This document shows positions 1,642-63,357 of a stretch of DNA of 64,000 nucleotides, in pieces. A program made the position numbers and the translations under genes. Position 1 is the stretch's first letter; every line of letters starts with the position of its first letter. The DNA is from Calcarisporiella thermophila CBS 279.70 (taxonomy: Eukaryota; Fungi; Calcarisporiellomycota), in the NCBI RefSeq assembly GCF_041956535.1, contig NW_027192207.1, positions 276,454 to 340,453 of the forward strand. Direction: 5' to 3'. Below the pieces are notes generated by a model. That model was not told the origin of the DNA. It did not search any database and worked only from the letters and a program-made list of their open reading frames with translations.

Positions 1642-3243
1642 ATGCTTACAATATTGATTTTCTTGGCTGCGTTTCCATGTGTCATTTGCGATACAATTTT
1701 GAGGCTCGAATATGGAATATTTAATGGCACTATTGAAAACGGGCTATCAGTGTGGCGGGGGGTGCCGTTTGCTAAACCGCCTGTTGGAGACCTGCGGTTC
1801 CGGGCACCGCAGCCACCGCAACAGTTCACTTCGGTTCAGAAGGCTGACACGTTCGGAAGCAGCTGCATTCAGTTTCGTACTCCTAGAGATAAAGAAAGTG
1901 CTGTAACTGACGTCTCTGAAGATTGTCTATATCTGAATATCTGGAGGCCCACAAACGCTCAAAATCTACCCATTTTGTTCTGGATCTATGGAGGCGGGTT
2001 TTTAATGGGTTCTTCTTCGTTGCCTGCATTCGACGGATCCCATCTAGTCCAGAGATCAAACAATAGCATCATTTTCGTATCTGCAAATTATCGCGTGGGT
2101 CCTCTCGGCTTTCTTTCTTCTGAAGAAGTTCGCAGGGATGGAGATTTGAATGCAGGCCTTCTCGACCAGAAAATGGCGTTGGAATGGGTCCGCAAGTATG
2201 CGAGTGCATTTGGGGGTGATCCGACGCAAATAACAGTTATGGGCGAGAGTGCAGGCGCTATTTCAATTGGACTCCATCTTATTTCTGCCTCTTCCACGGA
2301 GAGCTCCCGCTCAAATGGAAATTTAGAGTTGGGATCTCGGCAAGAGAACACTTCAAAGGCCTCAACAAAACGCCTTTTTGATAAAGCCATCTTGTCGAGC
2401 GGATCGCCGGCCGCCGAGACTTACTGTCGGCCATATAAGGACTTCCAATCAGTTTACAACAGACTTCTCAAGAAAGTTGGATGTTATTCAGCCGCCAATA
2501 CGTTGGAGTGTTTGAGGCAATGCGACATCAGATTGCTGCTCAATGCGGGCTATCAATTAACGCAAACATCGAACCCTATCCTTGCGTTTAGTCCAGTTGT
2601 TGATGGAAGGTACATTGTTGAAGACTGCTCAGAGCGCTTGAAGCAACAAAAGTTCCTCCATGTTCCGCTCATTGTGGGAACCAACACCAACGAAGGCGTC
2701 TCCTTCGTAGATAGAATACCATTGAAAAATACTACATTAGTTCTATTTGCGGCCATAAAGCGAGTTTTCCCGTCCGTTTCTATTTCTACTCTGCTGAGAA
2801 TTGCTCAGCTATACCCAATTGGGGCAGCATATCCTAAATATGAGTCGCGGCTGTCTCTAGCTGTCGGAGAGGAATCGATAATTTGCCCTTCGTTAAAGCT
2901 GGCCAAGGCATTTTCACCCGATGTATATAAATACCGCTTTAATCAAGCCGAAGGTCCTAATGGAGCATTTCATGGTGCCGACATCCCTTACATGTTTCAT
3001 AACACTCGGGGTATGATGGATTCAGAAGTTCAACTTGCGGACCTCATTTCAGACTATTACATCTCTTTCATACAATCTGGAGACCCTAACACGAATTCTT
3101 CACACATCAAATGGCCCAGATATGACGCTGGAAAACAAATTGTATTTGAGGCTGAAAAAACTGGTCTGGAAAAAGACCCAAGCGACAACGAGAGATGCGA
3201 TTTTTGGAATTCTTTTGACTATACCAGCTCTATTTTTGGGTAA
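1642..3243 (+). CDS. Secreted type-B carboxylesterase/lipase, intronless, 533 aa
   Basis: Signal peptide; WRGVPFAKPPVGDLRF, SEDCLYLNIW, oxyanion YGGGF, nucleophile GESAG, acid NTNEG, base GAFHGADI; TATAAATA at ~1573. Confidence 0.95.
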   Translation: MLTILIFLAAFPCVICDTILRLEYGIFNGTIENGLSVWRGVPFAKPPVGDLRFRAPQPPQQFTSVQKADTFGSSCIQFRTPRDKESAVTDVSEDCLYLNIWRPTNAQNLPILFWIYGGGFLMGSSSLPAFDGSHLVQRSNNSIIFVSANYRVGPLGFLSSEEVRRDGDLNAGLLDQKMALEWVRKYASAFGGDPTQITVMGESAGAISIGLHLISASSTESSRSNGNLELGSRQENTSKASTKRLFDKAILSSGSPAAETYCRPYKDFQSVYNRLLKKVGCYSAANTLECLRQCDIRLLLNAGYQLTQTSNPILAFSPVVDGRYIVEDCSERLKQQKFLHVPLIVGTNTNEGVSFVDRIPLKNTTLVLFAAIKRVFPSVSISTLLRIAQLYPIGAAYPKYESRLSLAVGEESIICPSLKLAKAFSPDVYKYRFNQAEGPNGAFHGADIPYMFHNTRGMMDSEVQLADLISDYYISFIQSGDPNTNSSHIKWPRYDAGKQIVFEAEKTGLEKDPSDNERCDFWNSFDYTSSIFG

Positions 3244-5007: not shown

Positions 5008-6600
5008 ATGCGTAGGATTTTAGTTTTGGCGACGCTGTTCTGTTGCGTGTTGGGCGACACGCTATTGAAGCTCGACTATGGCATGTTTAATGGCACAAAT
5101 GAAGACGGGCTGACCGTTTGGCGTGGGGTGCCATTTGCTAAACCGCCGGTTGGAGACTTGCGATTCAGAGCACCGCAGCCGCCGCAGCGCTTCTCTTCCC
5201 TGCAGCAGGCCGACAAATTCGGAAATAGCTGTATCCAATTCGTGAACATGACGGCACCAAATAATGCCTCAGAAGACTGCCTGTCTCTAAACATCTGGAA
5301 GCCCGCAAATGCACAAAATCTTCCCATTGTGTTCTGGATACACGGAGGAGCGTTTTTGTTGGGCTCGTCGGCGATGGACGTTTACGATGGATCGCGTCTA
5401 GTCAAGCAATCGAACAACAGCATCATTTTTGTTTCCTCCAACTATCGCCTTGGTGCGCTTGGCTTCCTAGCCTCTGATGAAATACTCAAGGACGGAGATC
5501 TGAATGCTGGTCTCCTTGATCAAAGGATGGCCTTGGAATGGGTTCGCAAGTATGCGACCTTATTCGGGGGCGACCCAACGCGGATCACCGCAATGGGAGA
5601 GAGTGCCGGCGCTATTTCAATTGGTTTACACCTTGTTTCTAGTAGCCCAAAGAATACAAAAAAGAGGCAGCGCCTAAGTTCACGGCAGGAGAAAGCTCCA
5701 CTCCAGCGTCCATTTGATAGAGCCATCCTGTCAAGCGGATCTTCAACCAGTGCTTACAATTGCATGACATACAAGTCCTTCCAACCCGTTTACAACGCAC
5801 TCGTTGAGAACGTCAACTGCTCAAATGCCAACAACACTTTGGAGTGTCTTAGAAAGAGCGATATAACTGTCCTGCATACTGCAGGCGTGGCGTTAGCAGA
5901 ATCCACATTCCCTCAACTTAAGTATCCTCCTGTCGCAGGTGGAGAGTATATTTCCAAGGGTTGCTCCGATGTGTTAGACAGCCGCCAGTTCCTTGACGTT
6001 CCGCTCATCGTGGGCACAAACACCAACGAGGGGACCTTGTTCGCCAATAATATCCCCAGCAATACAACTGAAGAATACATTTCAGGATTGAAGAAGATCA
6101 TTCCTTGTATCTCCAACTCTACCATACAGGATCTTATCAAATTGTATCCGGAAGAGAAGGAGATCCCACAATTTGATACACGACTTTCGCTACCATTTGG
6201 AGATATGACTTTTATATGTCCCGCGTATAAGCTAGCGAAAGCCTATTCCACCAATGTGTACAAATATCGGTTTAACCAGCCAGATGGCCCTCTCGGCGCT
6301 CGCCACGGAGGCGACATCCCCTACATGTTCCACAATGTAGCCAACTTGACTGCTTCAGAAGCGCAACTGTCGGATATCATGACGAATTACTATATCTCAT
6401 TCATCCGTTCTGGAGACCCCAACGCCCATACCCCGTATATCAAATGGCCTAAGTTTGCCGGTGAACGAATTAAATTTGAGGCAGAAAATACGGAGCTGGA
6501 GAAGGACACCTCTGACAATGAGATATGTACTTACTGGAACTCGCACAACTATAACTGCCAGCCGGATAATGCAAAAAACGAACCTAAAGATGAGCAGTGA
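5008..6600 (+). CDS. Secreted type-B carboxylesterase/lipase, intronless, 530 aa (tandem paralogue)
   Basis: Signal peptide; SEDCLSLNIW, HGGAF, GESAG, NTNEG, GARHGGDI; collinear with 1642-3243. Confidence 0.95.
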   Translation: MRRILVLATLFCCVLGDTLLKLDYGMFNGTNEDGLTVWRGVPFAKPPVGDLRFRAPQPPQRFSSLQQADKFGNSCIQFVNMTAPNNASEDCLSLNIWKPANAQNLPIVFWIHGGAFLLGSSAMDVYDGSRLVKQSNNSIIFVSSNYRLGALGFLASDEILKDGDLNAGLLDQRMALEWVRKYATLFGGDPTRITAMGESAGAISIGLHLVSSSPKNTKKRQRLSSRQEKAPLQRPFDRAILSSGSSTSAYNCMTYKSFQPVYNALVENVNCSNANNTLECLRKSDITVLHTAGVALAESTFPQLKYPPVAGGEYISKGCSDVLDSRQFLDVPLIVGTNTNEGTLFANNIPSNTTEEYISGLKKIIPCISNSTIQDLIKLYPEEKEIPQFDTRLSLPFGDMTFICPAYKLAKAYSTNVYKYRFNQPDGPLGARHGGDIPYMFHNVANLTASEAQLSDIMTNYYISFIRSGDPNAHTPYIKWPKFAGERIKFEAENTELEKDTSDNEICTYWNSHNYNCQPDNAKNEPKDEQ

Positions 6601-18617: not shown

Positions 18618-19219
18618 GGTTTCTTCTCTGATTGCAAAACCGTACAAAGTCTTTTAGACAAGTTGGAGGGGATGGAGATTTGGAATGTAGACGCACTTAT
18701 TAATTTCCAAGTGGAAGGAATAAGTGGGCACAATTTTGAGAACAAAGGAGAAAGAGGGAAGAGCAAAGGGTTTGTAGTGGATTCAGGGAAAGAAAGCAAA
18801 GGAAAAAAGGTGAGAGAGAACACGTCGATCATCCTTTTTAAGATTTTTTGCTTTGGCGGAGGAACCGAGGGAAATGGAAAGGGAAACATGAGAGAATTTC
18901 ATATTCTCCTACACAAAGGTTCATTTAAGATTCATATCATTATGTGAGTTTAAACTTCAGATTATTAGGTGAGCAATAATTTTGTGGGTGAATATTAGAT
19001 AAATAGGCGTGATGATAGGCAAAACAAGGTTGCGGCAAAGGGTGAGTGGATGCAATGGCTATTCCAGGCTCCTATTTTACGTGATCTTCAATCCTTTTAG
19101 ATTAAACGTTTTCCATTACGTCTGCGCATAGACACTTGCTCCTTCTTGATGTGCTGTCAAAAATGACTTAGCGGTGGGAGTGCTGAAGTCGCCCCCCCTC
19201 CCCCCTCTTTAGACTCGCT

Positions 19220-19373
19220 ATCACGAGGCCAGACCTCGCTCTACAAAATTTGGACCCCTCGAAGCAGCTAGAGACCGTTTAGGTCTAGGCCGCTAGGGTC
19301 ATTGTGCAATCCTATGACTCCTCCTCTAGCCGACAGCGCTTCGCTGATGCGGACTAGAGAGGTAGGAAAGTGT
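19220..19373 (-). ncRNA. Divergent U1-like snRNA with an altered 5'-splice-site-pairing end
   Basis: 5' ACACUUUCCU; helix H ACCU/GGGU; SL1 with AUCAGCGAAG; SL2 loop AUUGCAC; SL3 AGACC-UAAAC-GGUCU; Sm site AAAUUUUG (19251-19244); SL4 GCGAGG/CCUCGU; about 154 nt. Confidence 0.8.
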
Positions 19374-21529
19374 CTTTTCTCTCTTTTGGTATACACTATT
19401 AATTGCTCATCTGTATTACTTTATTTTTTACAGTGCACAATTTGATTTATTAATAATTTATCCGGGATTGGGTGTGTATTGATCAAAAAAATTCAGGAAA
19501 TCCAGGAATCAAAAGGATACAGATTGATTAAATTAATCTGAAAGTTACTGGCAGCCTCTCAAGCGTAAATTATAGGGTCAAAATTAACGGAGAATTTCTA
19601 AAAGCTTATACGCAGGCATCATGGCTGATAATTAGGCATGCGCATATACCAACTTCATGCAATACCTCATTGGATCATCCCAGATCGATTGTAGGATATA
19701 TTAGATACTGTATTCAGCTGGGAGTTTGAATTGCACTAAAGAAGAATAATATCAAAAAGTTCATCAAGATGCATCTATTTTTCTAAAAAGAGTGCTCTCG
19801 GAATTGGTATATATGGTAAAAATAAGAACTGGGTCATAGACAATGAAAATAAAATGATCGAGTATCATTCTCGACCATGCTTGTACTGTCAGAGAACTTT
19901 TCACACATTTCTCAAAGTCGTTTGCTATTTGTGCCATGGCTATTAGTATTCGTTCTCCTCTTACAATTTCCAATATAACTCATTGCTTAGACCCCCATGA
20001 ATTGGTCTATAGGACTGCTGCCAATTTCATCTAGATATCCTTTCCATCTCGAACACTTTGATTTAGTCTCCAGCCGCTCAGTCACCATAGTTGTGTATCA
20101 TGGTTGACAGACTGCAAGACTACGCGTATCAAGTGGTGGGCGCGAGACATACCAGCCAAGATGATCAGAAAATGGGGAAACTGAATGGCATCATATCTGC
20201 GAGCATTTAAGACATGGTATACTGTATAATCGGTCTCGCCTAAATGACTCGCTGATATAACTGACAATAGGCAACTTTATGTGTTGTTGTGCGTCAATAT
20301 AACCTCCTGCTTGATGTCCAAGGGGAATATTAGTTCAGGCCGCCACGACTGCACATTGACATCATCCATGGAACTGCTCTATAATGATGACCTTGCCGGT
20401 CGAGGAAAATCAGCTCAACGAATGGTGCTGAGCATATATCCGTGTGCTGTTTACTTATCTATGGAGGGTTCAATAAACCATATGTTTTTTTTTGATGGGC
20501 ACCACAAACGCAGTAAGTGGGTGCTGCTATACCAATGAAGTCCTCTCCAACTAGGACTTTCTTGGTGGTTCGAGCGATCCTACTGCTCCTTCCCACACGA
20601 GTTTAATCGAGAGCATGGGTCATATAGTCGGCAGCGGCTACCGGTGGCAAGAAAATGGATATTTAACCACACTCGACAGAGTGATGTGGTAGTTGCGGTA
20701 TCCCATAACTCAGCAAGTTAACTGCACCCAACGGCATCTTCGCTCATTCGCACAAGCCAGCCCTGCAGTCTTAATTCCGTACTTTAACCTGTATTTCTCT
20801 CGGATTGGTGTCGTGAACTTTCGGCTACTCATTTACTCACAAAAGAACTGGAAACTACAATTGTCTCCCCTATGTCTCAACCTCGTGTCAAAGTTTGTAG
20901 GGACATTAAATGTGTGGAGCGCAAATGGATGGCCCGTGGTCTGTTAGCTCAGGTTGGTTATTCCAATTTCAGTCTGGTCAAGTTCATTTTAGAGAGTGAT
21001 TTTGTATGGGCAGCCGACATTACTGCTATTGCAGTGCTGAGATCCGTAGCAAATGCAGTAACTAGATCGCCAGCCTTCTCAACAAAATTATTCTTTGGAA
21101 AGACTGAGACATTCCGAATATTCTATATACTAGTTTAATGAATATTGCGGAATAGCTAACATTGCAGCTAAATTGAGAGTGACTTATTTCTTTGGTATAA
21201 AGGACGTTTGAATTCTCATCATTGGTAGTTAATTTTGGATGATGCCGGAACGGTTATCTCATTGATATCACAAATATCAGATATCTAACTGATTTCAAGT
21301 AAGGAAAATAAAGTTTTTGATCCGGTTTCTATTTGCAGCCGAATCGAACTTCGTTTTGAAAAACATTGCCCATTGTCTGAGCTTTGTTGCGTTTCTAAAC
21401 TTCGAGAACATCTTTTTCATTAGATTCATCCATCTTTCATCAACATCCGTTTAACCTTATTTTTCGTTTTCTTTTATTTAATTCTGTGTGTGAAGGGGTA
21501 AGAAATACTCGGTAAGGCGGGATCTAATT

Positions 21530-42686: not shown

Positions 42687-45600
42687 TTAAAGCTTCCCTT
42701 GCAAAATCAGCTCTATGCAATTATTGATATACTCCTTCTTGGGGGTCATGTCCACACCAAAGTAGGCGGAGAGCTCCTCTCGAACCTGTTTCTTGGTGAT
42801 CGACATCAAGTCGCTACTGCTGATGATCCGCCGGATCTGCTCCACGATGGCGTCGTCCGATGGCAAAGGCTGCTGCTGCTGCTGCTGGCCCATGTATCCG
42901 TCGATGAGCGAGAGCTGCATGCCACTTAGGGGACGCGTCGATCCAGCTCCTGTGCCGCCGTTGTAGTCGAGCTCGGAGGGGACACCCATGCCGGCCGAGC
43001 GGTCAAGCATCATGGAGCCGCGTTGGGACGCCATATCAGGGAAGAAGAGGTGTTGAGGAAGCTGGTGGTAAGAGGCCATGGACATACGATCGGCTTCGAG
43101 ACCGGCAGCAGGACCGGGAGACCGCGATCGGCTACGTCCAGCGCTGGCAACGGAGTTACGGTGCATGGCTCCCATGGCCATTGCAGGCGAGGGTATTCCC
43201 ATTTGGCTGGCCGCATAGTGCTCCTCATCCCCGATCACAGACCCCGCCATCGACCGCGAACCCCGCTTCGAGCCGGAGTATCCGCGGGTACGGTAGGACA
43301 CTTGGGTGCCGCCGCTCTCGTGGGAGGCAGCCGTTCCAACCTCCCACATGTCTTGCTCGTAGTCTGACCACTTCCTCAGCGGGATTTCACGGGGGTCGAA
43401 TTTCCCTTCATCGGTGACGACGAATTTCTTGCCCTTTTCACCCACCACCACGCGAGTGTTACCCCACGAGAAGTCGTCGAAATGCCAGAAGGAATACAGC
43501 GGAATGTAGAACGAGAATACGGGAATGGCGAAGATGTAGAAAATCATCCAGCCGATGTGCTCCCACTTGCGCCGCAAGAGGAAGATGATGGCCTGCAGAC
43601 CATACACGGCAGCCAGCATGATCAGCGACGTCATCACCACGAAGCCCTTCGAGGTTGCCGCCAGCACCACCAGGTACACCAGGTATATCACCATGGCAGG
43701 CATGATGAGCGTGGCAAACAAGTCCACGAACACGACGAACCGCATCGAGAAACAACAGAAACCACAGAGATGAGGGAGGAACATAAGCTCAGCCAAGTTG
43801 TGGATCGTCGAGTTGATCCAACGGCGACGCTGCGAAAGCAGCACAGACCAGCGGTCGGGTGCGTTCGTTCTGCACTGAGCATCGGGGATGAACCGCAGCT
43901 TGAACATCGGGAAATGCTTCATCATCAGAGTGGTCAAGTAACGATCTTCACCCAAGTGGAGCAAGTTCTTCTTGTGCAGGGTGTCCACGGAGTTCTCTCC
44001 ATAGTCGTCGATCATCTCGTTGCTCACGATCAACGGCTGTTGTTTCTCGGGCGTGCGGATGCGATACATACAGAAACAGCCGGGCAAGCAAGTGACGGAC
44101 CCAAACAGAGACTCGAAGGCCTTCGAGAGATGATGCGAAATATAGTACTCGTAGACCTGGATCATGGTCACCCAGCTGTCACGCTCGTTGGAAAGCATCG
44201 TCTCACCGCACAAGCCAATCACCCGCGTGTCATGGACAAAGGTCGATACTAGTCGGTTGAGCGAGTCGGGAAGCACCTCGGTATCGGCGTCCACCATCAA
44301 AATGAACTCGTAGAAGCTTGGGTTCACCCCGATCACATTCTTCATTTGATGATACACTTCGAGCTCAAGCGGCGCCATCTCCTTATTGTAGTGAACCTTG
44401 TTGAGGAACCGCATCAAGATCATCTGCGAATCGCGTTTGCCACGGTTGCCGGGACGCTGACGCTCGGTCGGCTTACCCACCTTGACGACGACAATATAGG
44501 GAACCACGTGACCATTGCATTCGTACAATCCTGAATAGACCTTGCCCATATTATGCTGCTTTGCGCCCTCACCCAATGACTGGAAGCTGAGAGGCTCAGG
44601 GTCGACGTTGGGATCCACTCCCAGAATGTCAAGGACGATGCGGGGGGTAGGGCGATCGTTGCCGGAACCAATAATCATACCATCGCAAATAATGAAGAGG
44701 AGTTTGCGCTTGTCATCGTAGCGGAGTGCTGCAAGAGAGTCGATGGTCTTTCGCAAAGACTCTTCACCTTCCGTGTAACAAGGGACTAGAGTAGCGCGAG
44801 AAAAAGGGTCAATTCCAGAGGTCACATAGAATTGGGCTGTAAACGAGTATTCATACCTTGGCAGATGATAAACCGGTCGTGTTCTTCAGGCTCTCTCCGC
44901 GAACCCAACTGCAATGCCGCCAAGAATTTAAAGATGATGATGGACACCATCATGAGTGAGATGGCGAGCAACAAGTAGGTGCCAAACAGACACCGCGCCG
45001 AGCTTCGATTATCTACCACACCCACGAAGAACAAGTTGCGTAGACACACCCGTTGCCAAAGCTTTTCCCGGTCGGGCAAAGGCAGAGAGTCAAAATATTT
45101 GGTCACATCCTCTCCGGCCGATTTCTGGAACAGTTCCGTCACTTTAATATGCATAAATTCCGTTTCACCAATAGGGGCCGTCTGACCGGGAGGGGCTCGA
45201 TTCTTTCGGCCACCTTTGATATACTCCGTCATGTCATATACTGCATTGTCGATGACGGCCCAACGCCGGAGTTTATTGGGGTCGATGGCCTGATCTCGGA
45301 TGGCGTCCATAGAGTAGGCCATGTATCCGACACGATATTTCTTGCGCATCATCTCCATCTGGTTCCAATACCAGTCGCGCCTGAAATCTTCCGTAAAATA
45401 CCGGAAGTCATGGTAACGAGCGATTGGGTTTGTATAATTGAGGTTGGCGTCGAGTGGAACAGAATCATCCACCGAGCCCGTCACACCCTGGCATAGTGCG
45501 CTAACTTGCACAGGGAATATGTCCGAGGCATCCTTCCCCGCAAAGTTCAAGACTTCTTTCTGTGGAATTAGCGAAGGGGCCCAATGATTCGGAGCAAAAC

Positions 45601-48479
45601 GCCCTAGATCGAATACTTCTCCACGGATCGCAGTGAATTTTTCAGAGGAGTCGGAGGGAAATTGTAGTTCGTTGGGAGAAAAGACGTTTTGTTTCGGGCA
45701 GATGATCTTGTCCAAGCCAATGATGAAGAAGAGCTGGAGAGCGCATATAAAGAAAATGAGTATACACAACGCGACCTTCTCGCGCCAGGCGATTTGGATA
45801 TCGGGCCGTTTCTTCCCGCACGAGACAAGGCAGTAATTGGAGAAGGGCCAGGTCAAAAACCAGACGAGGGCAAGCCAGCGCTTGCGAGCCCCAGACATCT
45901 CAGCCACCTCCTCAAGCGTTTCATCGGGCGGAGGTTGTCCATCGGCAAGCATCGTCTTCATCTCCATTTCATTGAAGCCCAGGGAAACATACATATCCGA
46001 GCCATAGTTGGACTCGTTGTCGTTGTAGCGATCCGGATAAAATTCCTCCTCGGAGAGATATGACTGCACGTCCTCTCCGGTGTAGAGTGAACGCCCGTCA
46101 GAAACAGCTCCACCCTCCTGTCGTGGGTGTCCCGTTGTTTCTGACAGATATTCGCCCTCCTTGTCGAGCTTATCCTCTTTGGCGCGTCGCTGCTCGTCCT
46201 TGTCGATGTTCCGCAAATTATCCTCCAAGTCCCTCCACGACTTCTCGTTCAAAAATACCTTTGCATTGCCAACCGCCATGGCATCGGCAGCCCATCCGAA
46301 AATCGTGCGAGCTGCTTCACATTTCTCACGTAGGCTCCGGTTTTGCTCGATACCCAGAGGGTTAAGAACTGGCGAGTACCGCTCGAAAAACTCAGCATGG
46401 GTAAATGATATGGTATAATTCACCTTCAGTCGCTTTGCAATATCCACGAGACCAAGCACCCGAACTTGAGATTTCACTTTCTTGGCGTCAAACATGTTAG
46501 GCTGCCCATTATTGTTAGGCCGGATGCAAAACACAAGCCAGTTGGTGGTTTCGGATAGCGTGGTTGCTAGGTCATCGAGGGCACCGCGAAGTTGTGTAGC
46601 CACACATCTCATCGTTGGCTTGTCTTGCGCATCGGCTCCTCCCTCATTGGTCCCCTCCTTCTTCTTTGGGCGTCGCATTGAAGGGGCTCTTGTTGGAGCG
46701 GCAGACTGCTGTGCACTAACAATCGTGTTTTCATTACGTGGATGGGCCTGAGTAGCAAGAGCCTTCCCACGGAACAATTCCGAGATGAATGAGTTGCTTG
46801 TGGGCTTGATATCACTTCCACCACGGAAGAGCGCGATGAAATCGCCCCCTAGCATATCCAAGTTCATCTCGGTAAAACCGTCGATCGTGTAGTTAACTTG
46901 TCCTGCAAAGTGGCGGACGCTGAAAGAGTGTGACGTCTGCGTGTAGGTCCTCTTGCTAATGTTGGAAATATAGGTGGAATAGGAGGTGCATGTTTTATCG
47001 AATGCTTCCACAAGTGCCGAATCAGTTTTGGGGCCTTTGCCAGAAAATTGCTCATCCATAACCTTGACGATCCCATTTGACAGCATCTCCAAGCATTCCG
47101 AGTTGTCAGTGTAGGGCACCTTGGCCACCGACTGGACGCCATCCTGCTCGAATTCTCCCACATTGAAGAGGTGCTGGCGCACAATGGAGTGGAGGCGCTC
47201 GTTAGCAAAATTAACGCAGAATTGATCGAACAGATTCTTCTCATGACTCTGAAAACCGGGGAGATCCACAATGCCTATAAAGCTTGCAAACTCATCCCGA
47301 CAGAACTTGACGTTGATCTGCTCGACAATCCAGCTAAACAGGAGGGAATAGAGCGCCTTTGCGAGACTATCACGATGGGCGGCAGCCTGTTCAGCATTGA
47401 GAAACACAGTGGTCACGTCTTTCTTGATCATTTCTGTCTTATACGTGAGCACTGTCTCGAGCGCTTTCGTCTCGAGCCCAAGCAAATCAGCAGCAATGGA
47501 GAGGGTTTCCACGTTTTTGATCTGTGCTGATTCCTGCGTGTTCGATGAGACATCAAAGAATATCAAATTCCCGAGATGTAGGATAGCAGCGAGCAATTGC
47601 ATCACTTGGAATATTTGTTTGCTCCTAAATCCACACGACTTCATTGCTGTTCGAAGCTGGCCAAAGTTTTCTGCATCATCTATGGATGGGACATGTGTCA
47701 ATTGGCCCATGCTCGTGTAGCGGAAGGTGGATGCATCACCGAGTTGGAGATGCGATTGTTCGTCGGGCGACGAGCCAGCAAGGAGATAGTAAAATACATT
47801 AAAATTGCGCTCATGGAGGGGCACCGACACCACACGTGATCGCTCCAGTAGATAATCGAGGGTCTTAGCCCCCACCATGCGGCCGCGTTCATTAAAGAGC
47901 ACTTCGACATATCGACCAAAACGCGAGGCACCGTCATTGATGATGGTTTTAGCATTGCCGAAAGACTCCAGCACAAAGGCAGAATTAACCACATGCCCGG
48001 GAATCTTGGAGGGTTTTTTATGCCCCGTACTAAGAGCCCCGAGGTGGTGGAGAATATGGTTAAATGTTTTCGACTTCCCACTGCCGCTTTCACCACTAAT
48101 TTCAAGATAATTAGGTGAGTTGAGTCAAAAGAATGCAAATAATTTCGAGGAGTAAAAACCTGAGTATGATCGCTTGGTCAAGCCCAGTTCGACGCATATG
48201 TAGATAGGCATGTGATGTAAGCTTGAATATGTGTGGAGGGAGTTCATTGCGCTGCCCCGATGTGTCTTTATAGTCTGCTACATAGTCTTGACTTGCAGAG
48301 TCCAGCAGGCCAGGGAGATCTTTGTATGGGTTCACCACGACGAGGGCGACGTCGCTTAATGCTGTGTACACCGCATCCTGCTGGAATCGCTCTCGAAGAT
48401 TAGACACAATGTCATCCTCCGTGTGTGAATTAAGCTGACAGAGGTCAGGGTTTTGCTCGTAGGATTTACGTTTTCCCAT
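42687..48479 (-). CDS. chsV: Class V chitin synthase with N-terminal myosin motor, cytochrome-b5-like and DEK_C domains
   Basis: GESGSGKS P-loop, [22 protein letters not shown]-terminal [14 protein letters not shown]; two coding introns. Confidence 0.96.
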
Positions 48480-62433: not shown

Positions 62434-63357
62434 ATGAACACCACGGACATGGAAGTGACACCCAACACAGACCCTGCGCAGTTGTACAGATACATCATGC
62501 AACTTAAGGAAGCGTACGACTTACTTAAAGCCAAAGTCAAGGAAAACGAGAAGCCTACTCCGACTCCTCCACCCCCTGCCCCAGAGCCAAAGCCAACACT
62601 TCAACCTGGTAAACCCGACTATTTCCACGGTAACTATGGGGAAGATGTGGATTCATGGATCGCGTCAATAAGAAGATTCTTGCAGCTGTATAAGCTGCCT
62701 CCTCAAGATGAACTCTTTTATGCAATCTCGTACTTGAAAGGAAATGCACTGGCCTGGTGGAACACATATGAGAGACGAGCCAAGTTCAACCAAGAGCTCA
62801 TGCCAACCACTTTCGACCACCTCGCCCAACTGCTACATGCACATTTTAAACCTATCGGCTCCGAGGTCATTGCGCGCGAACGACTTGACAGGCTTCGTCA
62901 AACCGGGTCTGTCCAGGAGTATGCGTATGCATTCCAGACAATAATCAACGATATCCCAGAGATAAACTCGGAGACACTCCAATGTTTCATCAGAGGCCTG
63001 AAACCAAACACTCAAGCAGAGGTCAAGATCCGCCAACCCAAATCCCTTGAGGAGGCAATTAACTTAACCGCCAACATTTTCGACCAAGTAAAATATCCGA
63101 GCTTCCACCGAAACCCAAGCTCCAGCCCGATGCATCAAAAAACAAGCCACGTGCCCTTCGACCCTGCCACTCCTATGGAGATAGACGGCGTCCAGACACA
63201 ACGGTTGAAGAAACTAACCCCTGAGGAGCGGAACAGACTTATCCAAATGGGAGCATGCCTTCGCTGCAGAAAAATGGGTCACTTCGCCAGAAACTGCCCA
63301 TGGAATACACCTGTTGTCGGAAGCTCAAATGAACAGGCAAAAACCAACTCCCAGTGA
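62434..63357 (+). CDS. gag: Retrotransposon Gag (capsid + CCHC zinc knuckle), 307 aa
   Basis: KPDYFHG..VDSWI, YLKGNALAWW, LRQTGSVQEY, FIRGLK, PMEID, CLRCRKMGHFARNC. Confidence 0.93.
   Translation: MNTTDMEVTPNTDPAQLYRYIMQLKEAYDLLKAKVKENEKPTPTPPPPAPEPKPTLQPGKPDYFHGNYGEDVDSWIASIRRFLQLYKLPPQDELFYAISYLKGNALAWWNTYERRAKFNQELMPTTFDHLAQLLHAHFKPIGSEVIARERLDRLRQTGSVQEYAYAFQTIINDIPEINSETLQCFIRGLKPNTQAEVKIRQPKSLEEAINLTANIFDQVKYPSFHRNPSSSPMHQKTSHVPFDPATPMEIDGVQTQRLKKLTPEERNRLIQMGACLRCRKMGHFARNCPWNTPVVGSSNEQAKTNSQ

Follow-up and report, generated by a model that had tools for sequence, protein, structure and literature searches.

Genomic context and the snRNA gene set

The analysed window, a 64,000-nt stretch of the Calcarisporiella thermophila genome (C17:276454-340453), carries a candidate U1 snRNA gene located between the divergently oriented genes of a RhoGEF (minus strand, VTP21DRAFT_3353) and a myosin V (plus strand). 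The window also contains two intronless carboxylesterase genes in tandem (1642-3243 and 5008-6600), a myosin-chitin synthase gene (42687-47992) and, at its end, a Ty3 gag-like open reading frame (62434-63357). The candidate, its elements and its flanks are as follows:

19223-19373, minus strand: divergent U1 snRNA paralogue (candidate), about 151 nt, single copy in the genome
19374-19533, minus strand: upstream region, with no WCCCAYA element, no TATA near -37 and a purine-rich -1 region
19364-19373, minus strand: putative 5' splice-site reader ACACUUUCCU (canonical AUACUUACCU), with the changes A7U and U2C
19360-19363, minus strand: 5' strand of helix H, ACCU, able to pair with GGGU (three Watson-Crick pairs and one GU pair)
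19324-19359, minus strand: stem-loop 1 (SL1), with AGUC / GUCGGCU common to the candidate and U1a
19295-19322, minus strand: stem-loop 2 (SL2), stem short and weak
19310-19302, minus strand: U1A site AUUGCACAA, identical in sequence (9/9) and position to both canonical U1s
19263-19294, minus strand: stem-loop 3 (SL3), strongly paired, with a 5-nt loop
19254-19257, minus strand: 3' strand of helix H, GGGU
19243-19251, minus strand: Sm site AAAUUUUGU, ending at RNA position 131, as in U1a and U1b
19223-19239, minus strand: terminal stem-loop 4 (SL4), 7 bp
19207-19211, minus strand: 3'-box-like TAAAG, 12 nt past SL4
19362-19433, plus strand: intron-like stretch AG|GTAGGA ... TTTTTTACAG, antisense to the 5' end of the candidate

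An Rfam search of the genome (all genome-wide searches covered the 28.2-Mb assembly) revealed two canonical U1 genes, U1a (C18) and U1b (C5), with scores of 93 and 85 bits; both begin with AUACUUACCU. The presence of a canonical U1 elsewhere in the genome, a point raised with the original prediction, was thus confirmed. The other snRNA genes comprise U11, a U12-like match, three copies of U2, one of U4, three of U5 and a canonical U6. The U11 gene (C6:999547; L053:1501-1700) is about 200 nt long, compared with 134 in the Rfam model, and together with the U12-like gene (L172; C1:926673-926772) it indicates that the minor spliceosome has been retained. Two snRNA fragments were also observed: an approximately 24-nt copy of the U6 5' stem-loop (L178:278-301, on C23 near 578128), which is not a full-length U6, gives way to unrelated sequence and a run of T and sits among tRNA-like genes, and a truncated 5' fragment of U2 (L173; C39:109917-109998), which lies between the copies of a roughly 15-nt direct repeat (TGCCTGCGCAAGCGT) and looks like a retro-inserted piece.

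Relationship to U1 snRNA

The candidate shows the order of elements that had been predicted for it, namely ACACUUUCCU at 19373-19364, AUUGCAC at RNA position 64, the Sm-like AAAUUUUGU and a 7-bp terminal hairpin. A genome-wide search with the pattern ACTTNCCT..ATTGCAC..TTTTG returned only four places in 28 Mb, which are U1a, U1b, the candidate and one AT-rich chance match, while the control search returned none. The motif span is exactly 128 nt in the candidate, U1a and U1b alike, and the positions of the individual motifs are equal in all three, with ACUU starting at position 3, AUUGCACAA starting at position 64 and the Sm site ending at position 131. The global alignment score of the candidate and U1a was 54, compared with 9.7 +/- 9.8 (maximum 51) for 5000 shuffles; gapless identity between the candidate and canonical U1 is only 53/153. 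The predicted core fold has an energy of -0.42 kcal/mol/nt, while the best value among 80 chance motif matches from metagenomes, from which motif matches alone were folded, was -0.27.

Searches with the Rfam U1 and U11 models, proposed with the original prediction, found the canonical U1s and a separate U11 in the genome but left the candidate unmatched by both. The Rfam U1 model (RF00003) gave no match to the candidate at the gathering threshold (69.5 bits) or at E<=5, and the candidate is absent from the U1 matches of the whole-genome search. A covariance model built from the two U1 genes of C. thermophila ranked the candidate first in the window and aligned it end to end, at an E value of only 0.52. 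The possibility that the candidate is itself a U11 was rejected: the true U11 lies at C6:999547, and the candidate lacks the U11 5' sequence AAAAAGGGC and is unmatched by the Rfam U11 model.

The absence of an Rfam match and the E value of 0.52 would be compatible with motifs that came together by chance, possibly where a GC-rich exon belongs to a transcript of the plus strand (non-coding or 5'-UTR) with an intron at 19362-19433. This intron-like stretch scores like real introns, its donor being close to their median and its acceptor close to their 75th percentile, and 17 such intron-like pairs are present in the window; it may belong to a non-coding or long 5'-UTR transcript of the plus strand, or may itself have arisen by chance. 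Nevertheless, an origin unrelated to U1 appears very improbable, given that the motif positions are identical to those of both U1 genes, that the pattern search returns essentially only U1s, that the stem-1 sequence is shared with U1a, and that the fold exceeds those of the 80 chance motif matches. Judging from its sequence, the candidate is very probably U1-derived. It was not classified as a plain U1 because of its Rfam score, its altered 5' end and its promoter region, and it is best called a U1-derived paralogue, working, if at all, like U1.

Orthologues in related fungi, which the original prediction had suggested looking for, were found neither at the myosin V locus of Endogone and the RhoGEF locus of Jimgerdemannia, where there was no synteny and no U1-like match, nor by a motif scan of metagenomes, in which all 80 matches were chance ones. 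The closest matches to the RhoGEF are its C. thermophila paralogues.

The 5' end and GA-AG introns

The candidate ACUUUCCU agrees at seven of eight positions with canonical ACUUACCU, the complement of AG|GUAAGU, and thus does not carry a fully canonical end. Within positions 3-10 the single change is A7U, which faces intron position +2 and pairs with A there, and U2C pairs with G at intron position +7. The changed 5' end suited to GA donors, proposed earlier, is present in the sequence. Positions 7-10 are sequestered in the predicted fold of the candidate, as they are in that of canonical U1b.

GA-AG introns with GAAAGU donors had also been predicted, and protein homology supports six introns of the GA-AG type, four of which start with GAAAGU. 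Their donors are listed below:

eIF5: AAG|GAAAGTTT; the boundary of exons 1 and 2 falls between the residues matching human K24 and V25
Peflin-like: ATG|GAAAGTGT; a GT at +5 would shift the frame into stops
PEX39/KPWE (PEX39-like): AAA|GAAAGTAT; a GT at +5 would shift the frame (read by eye)
Aldo-keto reductase (AKR): ATT|GAAAGTTT; with a GT at +5 as donor, an in-frame TGA would remain; GT at this site in paralogues
M13 peptidase: ACG|GACGGTGC; inside HExxH, with GT in paralogues
SDT1: AAG|GAATATAT; GT, in the same phase, in paralogues

In eIF5, Jimgerdemannia and Umbelopsis have a GT intron at the same codon. The NCBI model of this gene (VTP21DRAFT_6607; L037:1267-1347; P0121) is without three conserved residues at intron 1, which implies that a GT 9 nt upstream was used as the donor, probably a forced choice; this GT is a rival donor for the intron. 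An aldo-keto reductase pseudogene with a frameshift, a stop codon and lost donors was also observed (L069; C6:561900-563250).

The predicted pairing of the variant 5' end was stronger than that of canonical U1 at all six GA donors, by 2.1-6.4 kcal/mol. The variant forms 6-9 Watson-Crick pairs with these donors, and the peflin donor G|GAAAGUGU forms nine consecutive pairs with positions 1-9, C2 included. For canonical U1, the AKR, SDT1, PEX39 and M13 donors gave values of -1.8 to -4.0 kcal/mol, compared with -5.7 as the median of real GT donors. An otherwise perfect consensus was found in 4/6 GA donors versus 14.6% of GT donors (p ~0.005, with ascertainment bias). The match of GAAAGU to the A7U variant is built in, since GAAAGU departs from the consensus at a single position, and the excess of perfect GA donors is also predicted without the variant, because a canonical U1 that tolerates a single mismatch would give the same result.

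Taken with the changed 5' end, these introns lead us to favour, tentatively, the reading that the candidate is an old U1 paralogue, specific to this lineage, which has remained functional and supplies 5' splice-site recognition for rare GA-AG introns. An alternative, which we regard as unlikely, is that it is a U1 relic deprived of its promoter and expressed little or not at all, that the GA introns are ordinary +2 T>A mutations served by canonical U1, in some cases perhaps in dead alleles of multigene family members, and that the A7U match is coincidental. The otherwise perfect sequence of four of the six GA donors would follow if canonical U1 accepted the change only in a site that is perfect elsewhere, the GA introns have GT counterparts in paralogues and orthologues, and the NCBI eIF5 model avoids GA, apparently by means of the upstream GT. 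The poor pairing of canonical U1 with the AKR, SDT1, PEX39 and M13 donors argues against such a relic.

The GA class seems to be small. Counts of a GGAAAGT, branch point and YAG pattern were not in excess over controls. When G|GAAAGT sites picked by motif were examined for their reading frame, none besides eIF5 was shown to need GA; most use a GT at +5 or are non-introns, and therefore GA introns seem rare and do not form a large matched class. In targeted stretches, an ab initio gene finder failed to discriminate between GA donors and GG controls (4 versus 1 and 3 versus 4). This rarity is at a level also seen in plant genomes, where GA-AG introns account for 0.01% of all introns, and in Parasponia a single GC-to-GA donor change is spliced normally (PMC10668435). 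In yeast, splicing from U2A donors is held up at the second step, and intron position +2 is checked again once U1 has left (PMC4836653). A change in U1 alone therefore cannot be the whole mechanism. The U6 ACAGAGA box and the U5 loop of C. thermophila are canonical.

Stems and protein-binding sites

The original prediction had stated that the helices stay paired, and in the predicted fold this holds for most SL1, SL3 and SL4 pairs (probability >0.85), but not for helix H and SL2, the pairing probabilities of which are about zero in the naked-RNA ensemble. Helix H is possible at -52.5 kcal/mol, compared with -61.8 kcal/mol for the minimum free energy structure; canonical U1a and U1b show similar gaps of about 11 kcal/mol under the same helix H constraints. 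In SL1, the outer pairs are swapped relative to U1a, with pairing retained. The loop sequence AUCAGCGAAG, which resembles the U1-70K loop of vertebrates, is predicted to be paired, closed by CAGCG/CGCUG, so that the alternative SL1 fold hiding this loop, mentioned earlier as a caveat, was recovered. A single U1-70K gene is present in the genome, and a second copy was not found. The U1A site is intact, although the stem that would present it is weak. The Sm site has four U residues, versus five in the canonical copies, and is followed by SL4, whose pair probabilities are 0.87-0.99.

The conservation is confined to functional motifs and their exact spacing, while SL1, SL3 and SL4 pair strongly in new sequence, as if the stems had been rebuilt; long selection therefore fits these features better than decay, and the candidate is probably under selection. 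The weakness of helix H and SL2 would suit a silent relic. On the other hand, a neutral copy that has diverged so far would not be expected to keep the exact motif spacing, all nine positions of the U1A site and the Sm site, nor would three well-paired stems be expected in new sequence.

The U1A and Sm sites are the best-kept parts, and those that would serve in a splicing particle, the 70K loop and helix H, are the most eroded. One could propose, as a distinctly improbable alternative, that the candidate is a functional U1-derived snRNP RNA with another job, such as protection from premature cleavage, blocking or promoting of GGAAAGU sites, or titration of U1A or Sm proteins, with A7U keeping the RNA off real GU donors. 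The GA introns, seemingly too few to explain long retention, would agree with this proposal, but no target class was identified, and the 5' end still fits the real GA donors.

Promoter and 3' flank

A WCCCAYA element is present at -67 to -107 in 11 of the 12 snRNA genes of the genome, and most Pol II snRNA genes here have a TATA near -37 and a pyrimidine-rich start. The occurrence of WCCCAYA and a TATA near -37 upstream of U1, U2, U4, U5, U6, U11 and U12 genes represents a PSE/USE-type promoter in a fungus.

Upstream of the candidate (19374-19533), the best WCCCAYA score was 1.1 bits, compared with 9.9-20.9 in the other snRNA genes. As judged from the sequence, the missing promoter elements are the strongest evidence against normal expression of the candidate. 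They favour the reading of the locus as a relic, and a promoter unlike those of other snRNA genes is also consistent with a non-splicing job for the RNA. At the 3' end, the box-like TAAAG has an offset of +12, close to those in U1a (+13), U1b (+11) and U11 (+11), but, unlike the boxes of the other genes, it has no A-rich tail, and such a match is expected by chance in about 2% of cases.

If the candidate is the functional paralogue that we favour, it would be transcribed from a non-standard promoter, and its RNA would probably be of low abundance. This RNA would load an Sm ring, bind the shared U1A and perhaps, weakly, U1-70K, and its ACUUUCCU end would pair with AG|GAAAGU donors. The ordinary U6/U5/Prp8 core would then take over the donor, and this core would likewise have to accept A at +2.

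Comparison with known U1 variants and U11

The candidate shares with U1 (RF00003), and with U1a and U1b in particular, the order and exact spacing of the 5' motif, a potential helix H, SL1-3, the U1A and Sm sites and SL4. It differs in A7U and U2C, in falling below Rfam detection, in the weak helix H and SL2, in the occluded 70K loop and in the lack of snRNA promoter elements.

Human variant U1s (PMC10870369) are likewise paralogues existing beside canonical U1; the 5' end is altered in some of them, and their expression and function are uncertain. Most are barely expressed and few influence splicing, which is in line with a relic. Compared with these variants, the candidate is single, is far more diverged and has only two canonical U1 genes beside it, and its change fits a natural donor class of the same genome. 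In Entamoeba and Mastigamoeba the U1 5' end has changed to complement atypical donors, as in the candidate; there the change tracks the genome-wide donor consensus (10.1101/2022.06.08.495308). Unlike the amoebozoan U1, the candidate is an additional U1, has changed the base facing the near-invariant +2 position and would serve a rare donor class.

A U1 C8U isoform of Eurytemora affinis has been proposed as a reader of GA-AG introns, the role we suggest for the candidate; the change is at position 8, which implies a shifted register, and also occurs in a human copy (PMC7072748). The change in the candidate, unlike that in this isoform, directly compensates +2. GA/GG donors make up about 12% of Eurytemora introns (PMC5714493), whereas they are apparently rare in C. 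thermophila. U11 (RF00548), like the candidate in its proposed role, is a four-stem, Sm-class 5' splice-site reader for minority introns, but the candidate has U1 motifs rather than the U11 5' AAAAAGGGC, which pairs with U12-type donors. In those tunicates in which 95% of introns are off the GT/AG rule, no dedicated U1 has evolved and the U1 5' ends are identical (PMC13326754). A natural U1 with direct +2 compensation was not found in the literature searched.

Implications for splicing in C. thermophila

The mechanism by which GA-AG introns are spliced is an open question in the field (PMC10668435, PMC7072748), and C. thermophila, which can be cultured and has a single gene of this kind and only a few listed GA introns, offers a way to test it. 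Should the RNA prove silent, the locus would still be a U1 relic missed by Rfam, and the GA introns would be annotation corrections. It is possible, if somewhat doubtful, that U1 and U11 are joined in C. thermophila by a third 5' splice-site reader, a natural U1 paralogue with a compensating change for the near-invariant +2 base, licensing GA-AG introns including that of eIF5; if so, and if the unusual promoter is conditional, the RNA could switch GA-intron genes on and off.
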